DNA from: Iphione sp. A-MEVVRFRX5
Lineage: Eukaryota
Length of the DNA stretch: 64,000 bases
Assembly (NCBI GenBank): GCA_976226885.1
Contig: OZ320313.1
Location: forward strand, 157,604,001 to 157,668,000
Reading direction: 5' to 3'
Both the position numbers and the translations under genes were made by a program. Below, piece by piece: positions 6,197 through 28,720 of this stretch. Below the pieces are notes generated by a model that saw only the letters and a program-made list of their open reading frames with translations, had not been told where the DNA came from and did no database searches. How positions within the stretch are numbered: the stretch's first letter is position 1; every line of letters starts with the position of its first letter.

Positions 6197-7577
6197 CTTT
6201 GTCTATTTCGCCTGTATCCCTGCACCACCTGGGTGATGACTGAGACCCCCAAGAACAGGGGGTGTGCCGTTATCACCCTGGTAATCCAACAGTGAATTTG
6301 CGGGAGACTGAGTCGTAGTAAGTTCAATAAAGGCATCAGCCCAGTTTTATTCCTGAATGCAAAACCATCAGCAATAAACAAATGCAACCACTACAACTTC
6401 CCTATCATGTAGGCGGGCCTATCAGTCTATGGGCCGTTCCAGGGTCTGCTGTCCCAATAAAGCCCCACATGGGCCCAAATTGAGAAAAATAATTGGTGTG
6501 TTGGTCTTTATTTCTGAATCAAAACCATTCCAATGGATGAGGGGGGCAGCAGTAATACGCAAAGAACCTGTTGAGCAGTGTAATTTGGAGGTGCTGACAC
6601 CCGTTAAGTGTACTGTGTACTCACTTCCTATGCACAGTTTGTGCTGTCTGTGCACTCTCTGGTGTCTTAGATGGGTGGCCGTCGGGCAAGGCCCCTTGTG
6701 GCCGGACTCGTCCGTGGCTGCGATGTGGGTTGCTAGGTGTTTGTAGCCCCCAAGCGGCTTGTCCTCAAGTGATTGGGGTGTCCGCATTAGATTGCCCGCC
6801 GTATCTCTTGGGAGTTGGGGGCGCTGGCAGGCCAGGCCGTGCCAGCATCCCGGTCGGAGTAGGGGTCAGCTCACTTCGTACCTACAAGGTCTGCACCCTC
6901 TGCCCCGGGCCGGGTAGCTCCGTCTTATGGTGGAGGCCCCCCTGTCAGGGGTGTGTGGGCACTACCCAAGCTGGCTAATCCGCTAGCGGCTGGGCTACTT
7001 CCCAGGCCTCCTTGCTACTCGCCTCAGCACAACTTGGCTCAGTGCGACCCATGGATGGGCCTTGTGGCGCGTGGTTGCATGGCGTAGGCACGGTCTTCCC
7101 TCAGTGGTAACGGTGCCGGCGCTGTTGCAGGGTACCACCTGAGTGGGGCTAAGCCCCCATCGCCACCAGTGTTTCTGGTTGGGCTCAGCCTGAAAAATGC
7201 ACACCCTCCTAGGGTGGGGGCCCGACATCCCTAATCAGCTGTTTTGAGCTACCTTACTGGGTGAGGCCATCCCATCTCCAGCAGCCCTACCGGCTATCTG
7301 TTCCCGCCCCCCCCTCTTTTCCCGGAGGGGTGTTGGCGTAATTGATCATGTGTCCCATTTCTTCATAGCTGTTGAAGGGCCTCGTCCGAGTGACACATCC
7401 CCAGCGCTTGGCTGGGGGCCCTTGGGTTCATGGCCAGTGTCGGGCCGGAATGGTGATTTTTTGGGTGGTGGTCCATCTAGTTAGACGAGTTTTAACGATG
7501 TTTGACTACTGGCCTTGCGTGTCTGCCCCAAGCCCAGGGCCGAATAGGTCCCCTGGTGGCAGTGCCTGAGCCAGCCC

Positions 7578-21705: not shown

Positions 21706-24239
21706 CTGCAGCGAGGATACCAACGAGACCGAGAACAATGCTGCCGTGAAGATGATCGATACCAACTTACATTGATTTTTTTATGAACAGATATTCTTTA
21801 TGGCGAAATCAGAGGAAACGATTTTAAGACGTCACTGCTTCTATCTTTATTGCTGAAGCGCCAATGGCCGAGCGAAAAGTTCCCTACCAAGGAGACGAAG
21901 CTGAAATCGGAGAAAGTGTGGGCCGACTAATGCAGGCCTTTTACCGATGGCGAGGCATTATTTGCAGAGATGGTCAGTGATAAGTTTTCCCTCGGCGTCG
22001 CGATGCCATCTCGCGATAAGAACGCTGACTCCCAGTAAAGTGGGGTGAGGGTAACAACATGGCATTCGATGCATTTCTACCGACGCCGGTAACACGACCG
22101 GTTCCACGGATCCGTTCTCTTAAGTTCTCTTAAGTTCTCATGTACCTAGCAAATATGACACATCAGAGGAATACAACAACAACAACAAAGAGAAAGCGCC
22201 AATGCGACCAAGGCATAAATGTAATCGCCAAAAGATGTTAAACGTATTGTTGATTCCATGCAGTCGTGGGTCGAATAAAGTACAAGAACACGTATCTATC
22301 AACAGATCCAAGTGTAGTCCGACCTATTGGCCACAAAGTGCCTGTATATATTCATGGCCACATGACCAGTATGTGATTAAGCAATAATAACAGGGTATGG
22401 AATATAAATGATATTGTGCGACTGATTCAAGATATATACATGTAGACCGTTTAACTCGCCATCACAGTATACAGCTCATGACAAAATATAGCAAGTGTAT
22501 ATAACCAGTTGTAGTGTCATGACTGAACGCCACAAACTGGTAACAAGGAGTGCAAAAATATATATGTATTACCCGTTTTTTCCTTTGAATGGTCGTGTGG
22601 TGCCACAGCCAACCGATACCGGTCGGGGTGCCATGACCAGACCTACTTTAGCATCTTGAATCTTCATAATACGTTCACGACTTACCCAGCTATTAAGCCT
22701 TGTTCAAAAGTAAAATTCCTTTTCAAATACTTCTCAAGTTATGTTCCACTCTAACTTCTAAAACCACATCTGAGATATTTCCGAAATATCTGCCTAACGG
22801 CACTTTCATATATGTTTCTAGGCACACTGTAAATCTCTCCGCCTCCGGACGCAAGCGCTTAGTTCATTCGAAGACCCCTCGAAGCTGTTCTATTGCTAAA
22901 GTAGTAAGTTCTCCGACCAACTCCGAAAAAAACCCGAAAAGCTCGCAGATCAGCCACCGCGAACAGTGTCTTTTATCACAGCGATCTTGTAGCGGGCACC
23001 CGACGTAATTTAGGGCTCCTTCTGCTGACAAACGAGGCAACTTCGCAAAGCGAATTGACTCTGCGGCACCGATTCGTAAAGTCACCAAGTCTACATTTTA
23101 TGGTCTCTTCTGAAGTTCCTGGCGCTCACTTCAGCACAAATATCGAATTGTCACTTTTAAAGCGAGGCAGGGTCTGGATAAACGTTGAATATATTTTCGG
23201 GCAATTACTGATGACTTCATTACAGATTTACGTGGTCGGGAGAGTCATTTGGAGACAGAGGAGAAGCTTTTTAAAGAAATCTCTTTTCCAGAACGTAGTA
23301 GCAGCACTTCGGTATACGGTACAACCTTTACATTATATATGTGAACACTGAAAACTGACTGATTATACCTTGTTCTTTTGCTTTGATATTGGTATTTTCC
23401 ATGTTTGCGTTTTCACCACCATTATGTAATGTTCAAGTATAGACCTTTCCAGGGTAAAGATTACTAAATTACTCAAAGTTTTGTGGAAGAGACCTGAATT
23501 CTATGATGAAGATTGTTAATTTTCAGGTCCAAACACAAGACAGTGCCATTTTCATCAGATGCCTCTTTGATCGCATGACGACGGGATAGGAAAACCGGGA
23601 CAGACTGCTCTCCCTCGTTTAAGACACACACTTATTCTGAAAACTTCTTAAATCACGTGTTGTCTACACGGTGGACCAGTTGTCTAGCATTAAAAGCGTT
23701 TCTTTCTGGGTCATTAGAGAAATGCAGGATCCCATTTGTTTAGAATATGTGTAAGTGGGGCAGAAATGAGTATGGCTTATGGCGATGTTTCTTAACTACG
23801 TTGTACATACCAATAGGGATTGGAGGGCCGGACGAAACAGAAATTGTCTTTTTTCATTCTATCACAAATGTTCATAACAATATACATATCTGTTTGACCT
23901 CATGAGACCTATTCATTTCAAAACATTGATATGTTTCTCCAAAGTTAACTTGCATTAGACTACCCTGTACACACTTTAATATATAGATCCTTGTGAGTCC
24001 TTCTAATGCCCCTCGAATAGACCAGACATTATCCTCTATAGGACCATTGATTCAGCTGTATAATCAGTAATTCCTATGCTTGCTTACTACATCTAAATGT
24101 GGAGATTTCACTGTCAAGACAATATTCTATTGTAGCAGTAAGAATTACTAGAACTCAAAAATTCACAATTCATCTGTACGTCAAAACTAAAAGTTAAACC
24201 CTGAATTGTCACCGAAATGCTCTACCTGTTTACCAATAA

Positions 24240-24554
24240 GGCCTAAACAAAAAATACCTGTGTTTCTGGTAACCCGACCGACCCTATATTAGACTCTATT
24301 GTGCCTTTTTATTTTTTTCTTGTTTTTTGAATAACTTTGGCATGAATAATGATAGAGACATGTTCTACACACCAAATTGTTCCTTAGATTACCGGCTTTC
24401 ATTTGGCATAAGTATTAGTAACATAACCATACACATCTCTTGTTTCAGAATACTTTTAAATTGAAAAAAAAGAAAAATAAAAAAAATGTCACCTACCGAC
24501 CGACCCTGTATTTTTTCACCTTGTTACAGGAAACACAGAACTTTTTTTTAGGCC
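24240..24554. mobile_element. PIF/Harbinger-type MITE (family B, ~315 bp)
   Basis: Imperfect ~33-bp TIRs starting GGCCTAAA, TAA on both flanks (24237-39, 24555-57), internal direct repeat ccgaccgaccct at 24274 and 24496. Confidence 0.75.
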
Positions 24555-24783
24555 TAAGGATGACTAAGCTGACGTAATTTCTGACCGTCTGGGTTTATGC
24601 CCAAGTACCGTATATTATTATATGGTTATGCCAATTGTGGGGGGTTGTAGTGTATGAACATGATGGGTCCATACAGAGGTCTGTATGGACCCGTCACGGC
24701 TGTACGGACCCCAACGTTTGTGGTGCCCCCTAGCATATATTTGTGGAACTGCACAGTCGATCAGCTGGCTGCAGAGTAACACC

Positions 24784-26882
24784 ATGGCCGAGAGAGATAT
24801 TGAACACCTGAATCAATCATTATCGGAATCTATGCAACCTGGATCACCCGAAGTAGTAATGTTGGAGCCGGCAGAAGGAACATGCAGTGAACCGGTGGAT
24901 GTACCAGCCCCGAAGAGACCCAAAAAAGTGCATTTTAACCCTCTTGTCGAAGTAGAGTATGAGGTAGATGATGAAGACGACCTAGATGATTTCGAGGATG
25001 GTGCAGCCGAATTGCAGACGTTCATTGAAAAAAGTAGGAACCCGCAGACAGTAAAGAAGACAGAACGTGACATTTGGAAGTTGAATGAATTTCTACGGTC
25101 AGTAAATGAACCACGCAACCCTGAGCAGATTCCACCGAAAGATTTAGACATCTTGATGGGGCGTTTCTTCCTACAGATGAAGAAAGCAGACGGCTCACAA
25201 TATGAGCCATCTACACTCACTGCAGTCTATGGAAGTTTCAAGAGATATCTCGAAGAAAAGAAGTATGGAAAATGCATAATGACGGATCCCGCGTTTGCCA
25301 CTTCAAGAAAAGTCATAGACAGCCGAAAGAAACAACTGAAAGCAGAGGGTCTTGGAAGCAAGCCGAACAAAGTGAGTGATTGTTGTAAAAGTAGTGTACG
25401 TACGGCGATTATTAACCCTTGTTCACTGTGAAAACAATATAAAACCCATTGATTTAACCCAGAGAAGGAATATACGAGTATTGTAGCAGCAAACATCCAA
25501 AAGTCACACATCTTCATTCATTTGTTTACATTTGCTGCAAGCAGACGACGCAGGCAGTGTAACGGCACAAAATAATTAACCGGAATGGCATGATTTTTTT
25601 ACTGAAATTAAAATCCTACAAATCATGAACTGTAGTAGTAAAAGTATTTTTTTTTCTATTTGTACAGTCTGACCCAGTAACACCAGAAGAAGAAGAGCAG
25701 CTGTGGAGTCAAAAGATCATGACAGATGACACCCCAAAGGGCCTCCGTAACGCACTCTGGTTCATCTTGACGAAATGCCTTGGTTTTAGGGGCCGTCAAG
25801 AAAGCAGGCAACTGAAATGGGGCGACCTAGTCTGCAAGAAAGATTCTTCTGGAGAAGACTACATAGAATTCCATGAAAGGGTTACCAAGACCCGCCAGGG
25901 AGATGGAAATCACCAACGCCCATTTAATCCCAAGTTATGGCGCAATACAGCACATCCAGAAAGATGCCCGATACACCTATTGAAGGAATACGAGAAGCGT
26001 AGGCCAGCAACAGAGTTGCATACCGACTCACCATTTTTCTTGGGCATAAATTATAAGCGAAAGCCTGAAGCAGAAGTTTGGTTTTCTCGGCAGCCAATGG
26101 GGGCGAATGAGCTAGGCCGCATAATGCGAACCATGGCAGAAGACGGCGGACTCCAAGGAAAAAAAACCAATCATTCGGTCCGTAAAACGGCTTGTACTGC
26201 ACTGCTACACGCCAATGTTGACCCCGTTGTCATCGCCCAACTGTCAGGCCACAAATCCACATCTAGCCTCGCGCATTACTCTGTAGCCAGTTACGAACAA
26301 CAGAAAAATATGTATAAGATCCTAGCTGAGAACACATCTGCAGGTGCACTCGTGCCAGTACAGAAGGACCCCCCTGAGGTAAAGTAGTATTATGATTATT
26401 TTCCATTTCAGCTTCCATTCCTGTAACAAAAGAGGCATTTTGCGCATTCCATTATATGACACAATTAACTAACCAATTTCACATACTTACAGCCACAGCC
26501 CGGTCCATCAGCGGTGGTAGCTGAACTCCCATCCATACCAGAGGCAGCGGCCCCTGTGCCACAAGTCCCAAATTTCGATCTTGGACTAAACTTTGAAGAC
26601 GATGATGACACCATTCCCGCATCTCAGACAGAGACGGTATGTTAGTCACAAATCATGAAACTGATATAGTTTTTCCTGTAATCAACAGCAAATTCCTTCC
26701 AGAGCATCCCAGGTCCGTACACCAGTGCTATACGGGCACATGTTTTCTTTCAGGTGGAGATGGCGATGACAACTCCTGATAAAACATCCAAAGCTATGCG
26801 GATCCAGAAAAGACTTCTCGACGGTTTACTGGCTGGCAACAAGATTGAGAACAGCACGATCAATATCAACATAAACCTGTAA
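24784..26882 (+). CDS. Crypton-A tyrosine recombinase (DUF3504-type; family related to KCTD1/ZMYM/QRICH1), 523 aa; exons 24784-25371, 25668-26378, 26493-26636, 26754-26882
   Basis: ACCATGG start; three GT-AG phase-0 introns that keep the frame open to TAA at 26880-82; catalytic set R (GFRGRQE), K (TKTRQG), HxxR (NHSVR), H (SGHKS), Y (LAHY); Crypton-typical C-terminal NSTININL. Confidence 0.92.
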
Positions 26883-27271
26883 ATTTAATCCAAATTTGGC
26901 CAAAAAGTTATTTGGCGCCTTCCTACGCAGTTGAAAACTGGACGTGTAGTTGTGCAGCCCCGTAACGGGCCAACAAAAAGTTGAAATATATATTTCTATC
27001 AATTGAATTAGTCAAAATAAATTTTTGTGTTTTTCATTATATGAATAAATCATCTTTCTATAACTGTTGCAAAGCATGTTTGTTACTTTTATCATAATTT
27101 GCTATAAAAATAATGAAATGTCAGAAAAAAGTTCACACGAGATTTCAACGAGAAGTCCGTACGCGCAAAAAACAAAACAACAAGATGGCGACCAAAACAT
27201 CTACTCAGTGAGTTCTTTTCTCTCTATATTTTCCTTCAAGAAGCTCCAAAAATCAATTGGCATGACCATAT

Positions 27272-27431
27272 AATAAAAAGAATACGTAGATATAGTGCTG
27301 ATACAACCGGCCGATCTCGCTCAGTCTGGGTAGCTACGCAGACCTCGCCCTGCGGGCTTGGTCTGCTTCGCTACCCAGACTGAGCTCGCCCGGCCGGTTG
27401 TATCAGCACCATATCTACGTATTCTCTTATT
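27272..27431. repeat. Long nested hairpin at the 3' end of Crypton 1
   Basis: Arms gaatacgtagatat(a/g)gtgctgatacaaccggccg / rc, gctcagtctgggtagc / rc, gcagacc / ggtctgc; apex gccc-TGC-gggc (27351-53). Confidence 0.95.
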
Positions 27432-27707
27432 CCTTTAACCTGAGAGCCAAGTACAGTGGAATCTCTATTTCTGACCAGAGGTCGGGTCTGGGCTCAAATG
27501 GTCACAATCGCAAGTTTGGTTTCAAATTGAGTGGATAGGGGGTCAGGGCTGAAAACAATATTCCTTTCTCCGTCTCTCTCTATTGACACATACAAGTAAA
27601 AAAGTACTGAATTTGACAAGTAAGAGTCCAAAAGGTTCTGTATTAGATGATTAAGAGTCTTAAAAGTGCAGCATTTGACAAGTAAGAGTCAAAAAAGGGG
27701 TGATTTT

Positions 27708-28720
27708 CAGGTGTGAGAGACATCACAGAGGTCGCCATTGAGAACCCCGGTCTTTCTCAACAGCCTCTGCAGGCTGTGAGTGACATCAGAGAGGTTGCCG
27801 TTGACGCCCTAAGTCTCTCCCAACCAGCCCCTCCAGGGTGTGAGGTACATCAGAGAATTTGCTGTTAAGGGTCGGTTTCCTTACATGCATTGAGATGCCT
27901 TCACCCGCATTTTTTGTCCACATTAGTATATATGCGTTTTATATGCATTTTCCAATCATGCACCTCCACGCACAGGGGTGTCTGTTGATGTGCATTGTGA
28001 ACTGTGTGTTTGTGTCCGTGAATGATGACCAAAATGGACGAATATGACATAAAAACCACAAAAATGACTACTGACTGCGTCTATGATCCATGAAACCTAT
28101 GATAGATCTTTGATAGATGTAGGAAAAAATGGCAAATGTCATGGAGAGAATGCCAAAAAAACGGCTATTTCATGGAGATTGTGCCAGATTCCATGGAGAA
28201 AGGGCCCCAAAATGGCAAATTTCATGGAGAAAGTGTTGAAAAATGGCTTTTGCATGGAGATTGTGGGAAATTCCATACAGGGAGCAAGTGTGAACAAATG
28301 TGCAGTGATCATGTTTTCTCACCCTTTTTTTCCTGTTTCAAAGACTATCTTCTGTATACCACTGCCCGTTTTCCGTCTGCTTGCATTAAATTATTGGTCA
28401 GGGACCATGAATGAACAACGGATGCCAAATGGATGTCAACCGATGTCAACGCACACGGACACAATTGGCACCCTCTATTAGAATCAACATGACCAATAAA
28501 AATGGACCCGAACAGAGCAAAAATGTACCCAAAACACATAGACACCAATGCATGTAAGGAAACCGACCCTAACTCCCCCAGTCTCCCCCAACCACTCTTT
28601 CAATCATTAACCCAGGTGTGAGGTACATCAGAGAGGTTGTTGTTGACAGCCATGGTCTCTCCCGACCAGCCCTTCCAGGGTGTGAGCGACATCCGAGAGG
28701 TCACCATTGACCCCCCCCCC
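27708..28720. repeat. ~63-bp minisatellite (about 5 units) interrupted by a MITE
   Basis: Recurrent cagg(g)tgtgag..acatc.gagagg at ~27708, 27770, 27835, 28614, 28676. Confidence 0.8.
27869..28569. mobile_element. PIF/Harbinger-type MITE (family A, 701 bp)
   Basis: Perfect 24-bp TIRs gggtcggtttccttacatgcattg; TAA target-site duplication (27866-68, 28570-72). Confidence 0.9.

Follow-up and report, generated by a model that had tools for sequence, protein, structure and literature searches.

What might be the use of a palindrome that is complete only when the two ends of a transposon are joined? This question is raised by a Crypton that we analysed in the window, i.e. the whole 64,000-nucleotide stretch at positions 157,604,001 to 157,668,000 of contig OZ320313.1 (assembly GCA_976226885.1, Iphione sp. 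A-MEVVRFRX5). Cryptons are the only eukaryotic DNA transposons thought to use a tyrosine recombinase alone, and their ends, target and mechanism have so far been undefined. A preliminary description of the locus had noted that this element carries a reverse-complement copy of its own joined ends, and had likened the copy to the internal complementary region of DIRS retrotransposons. The geometry is borne out by structure, conservation and covariation, whereas the junction as originally drawn has to be given up and the interpretation is only partly supported. The arrangement resembles the DIRS region, yet in our comparison it appears closest to an integron cassette. Our reading, to which we would give an even chance, is that the split palindrome is an integron-cassette-like folded single-strand recombination site of a CryptonA-type transposon, and not a device for DIRS-like templating.

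Read from 5' to 3', the element is laid out as 5'-X'-gene-X-Y-loop-Y'-3', where the internal segment X pairs with the 5' terminal segment X', and Y and Y' are the arms of a terminal hairpin. Relatives for comparison were drawn from a 1.18-Gb eukaryotic assembly, and L-numbers designate individual loci. The parts that matter for the argument are the following:

24615 to 27429, + strand: the whole Crypton element, 2815 bp, TTATT...CTCTTA, delimited by sister-copy boundaries, a paralogous empty site and an exact genomic head-to-tail junction.
24605 to 24614, + strand: target DNA left of the insertion, consisting of GTAC, an RTAY half-site (24605-24608), and six variable nucleotides, cgtata (24609-24614), presumed to be the 6-bp overlap region; defined by the comparison of 28 insertions and the empty site of L052.
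24615 to 24637, + strand: the 5' terminal segment X', which pairs with the internal segment as a 22/23 inverted repeat, is kept in all copies and is probably the recombinase-binding arm beside the crossover.
27254 to 27276, + strand: the internal segment X, complementary to the 5' end, recognised by its 22/23 pairing, by 90.5% pairing with its own partner over 24 nt and by a permutation test.
27276 to 27350, + strand: the left hairpin arm, with a conserved unpaired block, ATCTC, at 27314-27318 (repeat finder, fold and covariation).
27351 to 27353, + strand: the hairpin loop, TGC on the + strand (in 16/19 aligned copies) and GCA, a GNA-type triloop, on the - strand.
27354 to 27429, + strand: the right hairpin arm and 3' terminus ...CTCTTA, with a conserved unpaired block, TCGCC, at 27386-27390 (repeat finder and covariation).

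A repeat finder returns 24615-24637 and 27254-27276 as 23-nt inverted repeats with 22/23 matches, just as the preliminary description had it when it let an extension of the left arm pair with the 5' terminus, and 27276-27350 and 27354-27428 as a hairpin whose 75-nt arms are 87% complementary. As single-stranded DNA this hairpin folds at -72.4 kcal/mol (z = -15.6 vs shuffles). Segment X runs unbroken into the left arm, and the reverse complement of 27254-27288 is identical in layout to the joined ends except for 2 nt at the joint, which supports the internal copy proposed in the preliminary description. No inverted terminal repeats are formed by the two termini, since the 5' end pairs internally and the 3' end pairs with the left arm; what we have is an imperfect palindrome whose outer box is divided between the two ends of the linear element. 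In 18 copies, joining the ends in silico adds 22-32 bp to the stem and improves its folding energy by -16 kcal/mol on average (-11 to -24). The joined ends fold to a stem of ~100 bp, from which 2 nt (TA) bulge out at the joint. This geometry is far beyond chance.

The genome holds ~20 full-length relatives that are only 67-75% identical, with a uniform body orientation among the full copies of the lineage, as well as many non-autonomous copies of ~600 bp in which only ~150 nt at the 5' end and ~260 nt at the 3' end have been kept. The same layout is found in all ~45 copies from which both ends were extracted (67-90% identical). When the hairpins of 19 copies are aligned, 61 consensus pairs are obtained and 96.5% of the cells are paired; compensatory double changes are seen in 32/61 of these pairs, as against a mean of 14.9 (maximum 20) in column shuffles and 5-10 in slid registers. 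In 25 copies the stem formed by X' and X is 90.5% paired over 24 nt and has 7 positions changed on both sides, and upon permuting the internal segments among copies this level of pairing was reached in 0/1000 cases (mean 86.8%, maximum 89.3%). Such two-sided changes can be followed in individual families, e.g. CCGAT on both sides in short copies vs CCAAT in autonomous ones, several in L038 (GG to CC, CCAAT to CTGAT), and pairing that reaches 32 nt in L006, L007 and L012 with three different sequences. A mismatch at position 13 of this stem recurs in many families that are ~30% diverged. The preliminary description had staked its case on the internal segment following the changes of the 5' end across families, and both the permutation and the two-sided changes fail to refute it. 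By the alignment of these copies, the internal segment and hairpin are shown to be a cis element that is conserved, co-evolves and is linked to the exact termini.

Some irregular arrangements were observed among the non-autonomous copies. In the short copy L059 (L059:1331-1651, C11:76200305-76200625) the terminal hairpin is tandemly duplicated, the first unit being truncated in its right arm and abutting the left arm of the second. L056 and L057 (C22:61746238-61747500) are two same-orientation copies ~125 nt apart, and the first 32 nt of the upstream one are replaced by unrelated sequence. In the short copies L053, L060, L062, L066, L070 and L078 an internal CTACATATTCTCATGGAAGG... matches the final 12 nt of the 3' arm before it diverges, and might represent another incomplete copy of the terminal arm.

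For animal Cryptons, terminal repeats were either not found or were variable and poorly conserved (PMC3212892, PMC13465315), and the 4-6 bp terminal direct repeats that are taken as recombination substrates in fungal Cryptons have not been reported in animal ones. The preliminary description let the element span 24615-27431 and let its ends join at a common TTATT. The 5' end stands, whereas the 3' end does not. In a comparison of 28 independent insertions only TTA is invariant at the 3' end; the base after it varies even between sister copies (L012/L016, L051/L052), and the T following that variable base is part of the flanking target motif. The short copy L052 lies in a repeat and reads ...agaaga/TTATT...CTCTTA/CTacag... 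(slashes mark the points of insertion), and its two uninterrupted paralogs, which are 80-90% alike, read ...AGAAGA/CAATAG... and ...ATAGGA/CTACAG.... Therefore the inserted DNA is TTATT...CTCTTA. The target has not been duplicated and contains no TTA, and the TTAs at the two termini both belong to the element.

The joint itself can be found in the genome. A 33-nt pattern (CTCTTA then TTATTATATGGTTATGCC) has one perfect match, at C4:90027044-90027076 (- strand), while the control has none. The head-to-tail junction at this place reads CTCTTA/TTATTATATGG, with both TTAs present, and could be a tandem dimer or a copy inserted exactly at another copy's 5' end. The joint proposed earlier has no end-type match genome-wide, only two 3-mismatch hits that resemble variants of the internal segment, and with a loose pattern its count is about that of the background (about 14 hits vs about 9 expected per gap length), only longer context patterns being decisive for such counts. 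The real joint, carrying two TTAs, is 2 nt longer than the internal copy. Since only TTA is constant, and given the empty site and the CTCTTA/TTATT junction, the element ends at 27429 and not at 27431, so that 27430-27431 (TT) are flank. The 28 insertions, the L052 empty site and the genomic junction together speak against the joining of the ends at the common TTATT, which places the joint off by 3 nt.

For the window copy the predicted empty site is ...gtaccgtata/ttcctttaacc (alternatively written ...aagtaccgtata/ttcctttaacc), and the one given previously, ...ccgtataTTATTcctttaacc, does not agree with the revised 3' end at 27429. As for empty sites of other copies, the 5' flanks of L002 and L031 have no second copy in the genome, those of L029 lie within a tandem repeat, and an inverted paralog beside L053 stops at the insertion point and is uninformative. 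The target is defined by the insertions themselves. Bases -10 to -7 before the 5' end read R-T-A-Y, with T at -9 in 25/28 and A at -8 in 26/28, and are followed by variable bases from -6 to -1; directly after the 3' end there is again R-T-A-Y (T in 28/28, A in 24/28; about 35/40 in a wider set). The target is thus RTAY-N6-/RTAY, i.e. two self-complementary half-sites around a 6-bp spacer, which is the layout of a classical tyrosine-recombinase core. A Tn916-like "coupling sequence" was considered for the six variable nucleotides and ruled out, as they match the paralogous empty sites, and so was a target duplication of RTAY, as the two motifs of one insertion differ from each other.

Tyrosine recombinases cut each strand at the 5' edge of the overlap, and the observed insertion point is therefore the bottom-strand cut ("bottom" relative to the recombinase gene). 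In 28/28 insertions the variable N6, which differs between copies and is target-derived in the single case examined (L052), stands at the 5' junction, and the element's own CTCTTA stands at the 3' junction. One would expect two staggered exchanges across unlike overlaps to leave a heteroduplex, and the opposite arrangement to be recovered about half the time. Because the junctions are one-sided in 28/28 cases, with none of the opposite type, we infer, if only indirectly, that the bottom strand alone is exchanged.

The sequence statistics of the hairpin also favour one strand. On the + strand the conserved non-Watson-Crick oppositions are A.C, T.C, T.C and C.T (27314-27318 vs 27386-27390), with two more T.C/C.T pairs on either side of the tip, and they hold in 16-19 of 19 copies while the neighbouring stems co-vary. 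Their equivalents on the - strand are G.T, G.A, G.A and A.G, including CGAG opposite CGAG, a tandem G.A motif, and the loop there is GCA; the tandem G.A motif and the GCA triloop are both known as stable single-stranded DNA motifs. At the variable column 86/118 an alternation of A:T and A.C on the + strand amounts to A:T and G.T on the - strand. Folding with generic DNA parameters favours the - strand in 18/19 hairpins and in 17/18 joined constructs. A role on a single-stranded intermediate, as the preliminary description suggested, would fit this strand-specific pattern of mismatches.

A second lineage can be examined in one ENA assembly (loci L082, L084 and L086), in which the recombinase is 53% identical and the palindrome lies 5' of the gene, i.e. 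the gene is flipped. Directly behind the hairpin there are 15 nt that recur, in exact reverse complement, at a site 3.8 kb downstream. The resemblance between two copies breaks off precisely where this site ends, which identifies it as the true 3' terminus, and the two lineages thus have the split palindrome in common. In this lineage it is the gene-sense strand that has the G.A pairs, with CGAG/CGAG and a GGA triloop. In both lineages, although their sequences are unrelated, the purine-mismatch strand is the strand with the hairpin at the element's 5' end.

These observations lead us to propose, tentatively and with somewhat less than even confidence, that animal Cryptons move via a folded single-stranded hairpin, in which only the strand that has the hairpin at its 5' terminus would be cleaved and exchanged with RTAY-N6-RTAY, to be resolved by replication. 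For the present element, at the even chance given above, the working form would be the folded antisense (-) strand, with its GCA triloop and with the mismatches turned into G.A and G.T pairs. On this strand the internal segment would supply a partner for the far element end, which would become duplex and adjoin the hairpin, and both element boundaries would be brought next to each other at the foot of a single ~100-bp stem. The stem would act as a duplex recombinase-binding arm beside the cleavage point (AATAA/TA on the - strand), with the 2 nt (TA) bulged at the joint once the ends are joined, and GTCC[AG]TAC motifs near the termini might be accessory binding sites. The recombinase would then exchange one strand with the duplex RTAY-N6-RTAY at the canonical bottom-strand position, and replication would complete the process. 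Folded single-strand attC sites with replicative resolution, as outlined in PMC3458562, are a precedent for such a route.

The palindrome may also be an ordinary duplex att site, and Cryptons have classically been proposed to move as double-stranded circles (PMC3212892). The internal segment and left arm would then be a second, inverted copy of the recombinase-binding arms, in line with the second, inverted att site considered in the preliminary description, serving the assembly of a higher-order complex, inversion, or integration via either copy, and the mismatches would be polarity marks in the duplex. Such a site would go well with a target that resembles an ordinary duplex core, RTAY-N6-RTAY, and with the different orientation of the gene relative to the palindrome in the two lineages, as inversion between inverted sites would yield, although the full copies of the window lineage all share one body orientation. 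On the other hand, compensatory change in 32/61 pairs needs intrastrand pairing or arm-to-arm copying and is not predicted by duplex binding; nearly all conserved arm differences give G.A or G.T on one strand, and do so in two sequence-unrelated lineages; and one-sided junctions in 28/28 insertions are unexpected from two staggered exchanges across unlike overlaps. We consider this alternative unlikely, if a serious one. The remaining possibilities are further removed. If the palindrome completed on the circle were a replication origin or a fold-back primer that forms only after excision, one could understand why the stem gains 22-32 bp only on end joining, and strand-specific folding would also suit a single-strand origin; yet a gene for a replication protein is absent from the element, the conserved unpaired blocks would be lost through fold-back copying, and the crossover lies inside the stem beside a conserved arm, as a recombination site needs, which makes this idea improbable.

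The templating or end repair entertained in the preliminary description would have the internal region act, in the manner of DIRS, as a template from which the termini are rebuilt or repaired in each round. While the geometry fits the definition of an internal region complementary to the joined ends (PMC13465315), there is neither a reverse transcriptase nor any other polymerase in the element, the same position-13 mismatch persists across families that are ~30% diverged, where templating would remove it, and the actual joint exceeds the internal copy by 2 nt; we regard this explanation as highly improbable. Least credible of all is a hairpin acting at the level of RNA, e.g. as an antisense transcript that gives rise to small RNAs, or as a terminator or polyadenylation structure, with the match to the 5' end being secondary. 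It is true that the internal segment holds AATAAA downstream of the stop codon and that G.U pairs would be tolerated on an antisense RNA, but gene-less non-autonomous copies retain the whole arrangement, it is with the extreme terminus of the element that the segment pairs, and the crossover falls within the stem.

A folded single-strand site is the explanation that we prefer, and several points weigh against it. The boundaries are drawn from one empty site (two paralogs) and one head-to-tail junction. The spacing of the RTAY-like motifs is 7 nt in the joint and 5 in the internal copy, compared with 6 in the targets, and the right flank of the window copy, ttcc, departs from the target consensus. 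The position-13 mismatch of the X'/X stem is a G.T on the + strand and not on the - strand, so that the strand argument is confined to the hairpin, where the conserved arm differences could also be polarity marks for duplex-binding proteins. The copies are related by descent, and the cell counts given above are not counts of independent events. Finally, the single-stranded or circular intermediates are hypothetical.

How does this arrangement compare with known systems? The anatomy of an integron cassette is such that its first bases pair with an internal box preceding the 3' palindrome, and here as well the first bases of the linear element are complementary to an internal box that stands before a 3' imperfect palindrome. 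Further likenesses to the cassette and its attC site are that the palindrome is complete only with the ends joined, that it has conserved unpaired features and, by its sequence statistics, probably one favoured strand, and that insertion occurs at one cleavage position of a tyrosine-recombinase core and leaves the target unduplicated. As outlined in PMC3458562, unlike overlaps are tolerated in integrons via one-strand exchange followed by replication, while the single-strand reactivity is here a presumption. In contrast to integrons, the host is a eukaryote, the element brings its own intron-containing DUF3504 recombinase, which is not of the IntI type, the split part is 23-32 nt long (6 in attC) in a stem of about 100 bp, and the targets are dispersed RTAY-N6-RTAY sequences rather than an attI platform. 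In the attP(+) of CTX-phi, used by XerCD, two inverted copies of the site, about 150 nt apart, fold in one strand into a hairpin and mimic a duplex recombination site, and integration takes place by one pair of strand exchanges, which would be similar to the route proposed here; CTX-phi differs in being a phage that packages its genome as single-stranded DNA, relies on the recombinases of its host and integrates at a fixed dif target. 

The "peel and paste" elements of the IS200/IS605 family (PMC5027513) also have hairpins near their ends, are excised and inserted as single strands in a strand-specific manner, and pair their cleavage sites with internal bases, although they use an HUH Y1 transposase instead of a tyrosine recombinase and guide sequences of 4 nt. 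DIRS1 shares with the present element an internal region complementary to the termini as joined, as well as a tyrosine recombinase that is encoded by the element. However, the Crypton has no reverse transcriptase, RNase H, methyltransferase or inverted terminal repeats, and its internal copy, which adjoins a hairpin, is 2 nt off the joint and has a fixed mismatch, does not look like a template for copying. In our literature search we found no paper linking Cryptons to hairpins, palindromes or single-stranded sites.

The recombinase is encoded by a single gene with four inferred exons, 523 codons that are open throughout. The exons were searched one at a time:

24784 to 25371, + strand: exon 1, 196 codons, the N-terminal region (open frame, weak match to the QRICH1 domain, GT donor read directly).
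25668 to 26378, + strand: exon 2, 237 codons, the DUF3504 and Phage_integrase catalytic domain (Pfam PF12012, E = 1e-25; PF00589, E = 1e-10).
26493 to 26636, + strand: exon 3, 48 codons, inferred (open frame, AG/GT splice signals read directly).
26754 to 26882, + strand: exon 4, 42 codons and a stop, inferred (open frame, splice acceptor read directly).

The translation of exon 2 shows the R...K...HxxR...H...Y pattern, and its nearest proteins are invertebrate DUF3504 recombinases, 40-55% identical. Within 24615-27429 the only long frames are the recombinase exons, which gave no further Pfam match; neither a reverse transcriptase or other enzyme nor an RNase H or methyltransferase gene was found among the frames. 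Both the frames and the Pfam matches agree with the initial assignment of the locus to a tyrosine-recombinase element that lacks reverse transcriptase, and by its gene content the element is a Crypton of the CryptonA lineage. As in CryptonA (Kojima and Jurka 2011, PMC3212892; Glomhopper, PMC13465315), there is one intron-containing DUF3504/Phage_integrase gene with a QRICH1-like N-terminal region, there are non-autonomous derivatives, and there is neither a reverse transcriptase nor long terminal repeats, while the TATGG-type terminus is reminiscent of CryptonS. Precise ends, a conserved split palindrome with its internal complementary segment, subterminal motifs and a defined target set the present element apart from the CryptonA elements of those papers. 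An AATAAA at 27272-27277, within the internal segment and downstream of the recombinase stop codon, is present in every copy, and could double as the polyadenylation signal of the recombinase mRNA.

The subterminal motifs are located as follows:

24667 to 24709, both strands: GTCC[AG]TAC motifs at 24667-24674 (+), 24683-24690 (-) and 24702-24709 (-), at positions shared with diverged copies; the first two make a small palindrome, 24661-24696.
26713 to 26720, + strand: a subterminal GTCCGTAC motif in intron 3 (motif scan).
27155 to 27162, + strand: a subterminal GTCCGTAC motif ~100 nt before the internal segment, retained in short non-autonomous copies (motif scan).

Of the seven occurrences of GTCC[AG]TAC in the 64-kb window, five are inside the Crypton. 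The motifs keep the same relative positions in diverged autonomous and short copies and are inverted between the two ends, and we regard them as candidate accessory binding sites.

Cryptons are the source of several vertebrate genes, and exact ends, a co-evolving split palindrome, a core-like target motif and a strand-specific structural signature are now available from the present copy and its relatives. If the folded-site reading is true, integron attC and CTX-phi recombination would have their first parallel in eukaryotes, and one would understand how a "cut-and-paste" tyrosine-recombinase element can gain copies. Folded single-strand recombination has so far been a bacterial speciality, and might then have to be reckoned with in animals as well. 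A recombinase of 523 codons with a cis requirement of roughly 400 bp, to judge from the short copies, might be of interest to tool builders.

Palindromes were also seen next to DUF3504 genes elsewhere. On a Ptychodera flava chromosome (L083:5076-5697) a 622-nt 3' palindrome, 83% self-complementary, begins 23 nt past a KIAA1958-like DUF3504 gene; a partner for the palindrome flank was looked for upstream in L083, and none was found. L087 has only a 12-nt partner (E about 0.03), and no partner segment was found in L085. A Mytilus coruscus contig has two similar palindromes of ~170 nt, one each side of a DUF3504 gene (L088:4089-4258 and 6623-6793), which may be two adjacent elements or a different end architecture.

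In the window the Crypton has repetitive neighbours on both sides. At 24239-24555, 60 nt upstream, there is a ~317-bp element that is bounded by terminal inverted repeats (AGGCCTAAACAAAA... / ...TTTTTTTTAGGCCT), has more inverted repeats in its interior and looks like a miniature inverted-repeat element, and related sequence is found beside L038, L073 and L076. Downstream, at 27600-27866, there are tandem arrays with a period of 31 nt (27600-27723) and of ~63 nt (27698-27866), and similar sequence flanks L055 and L079.

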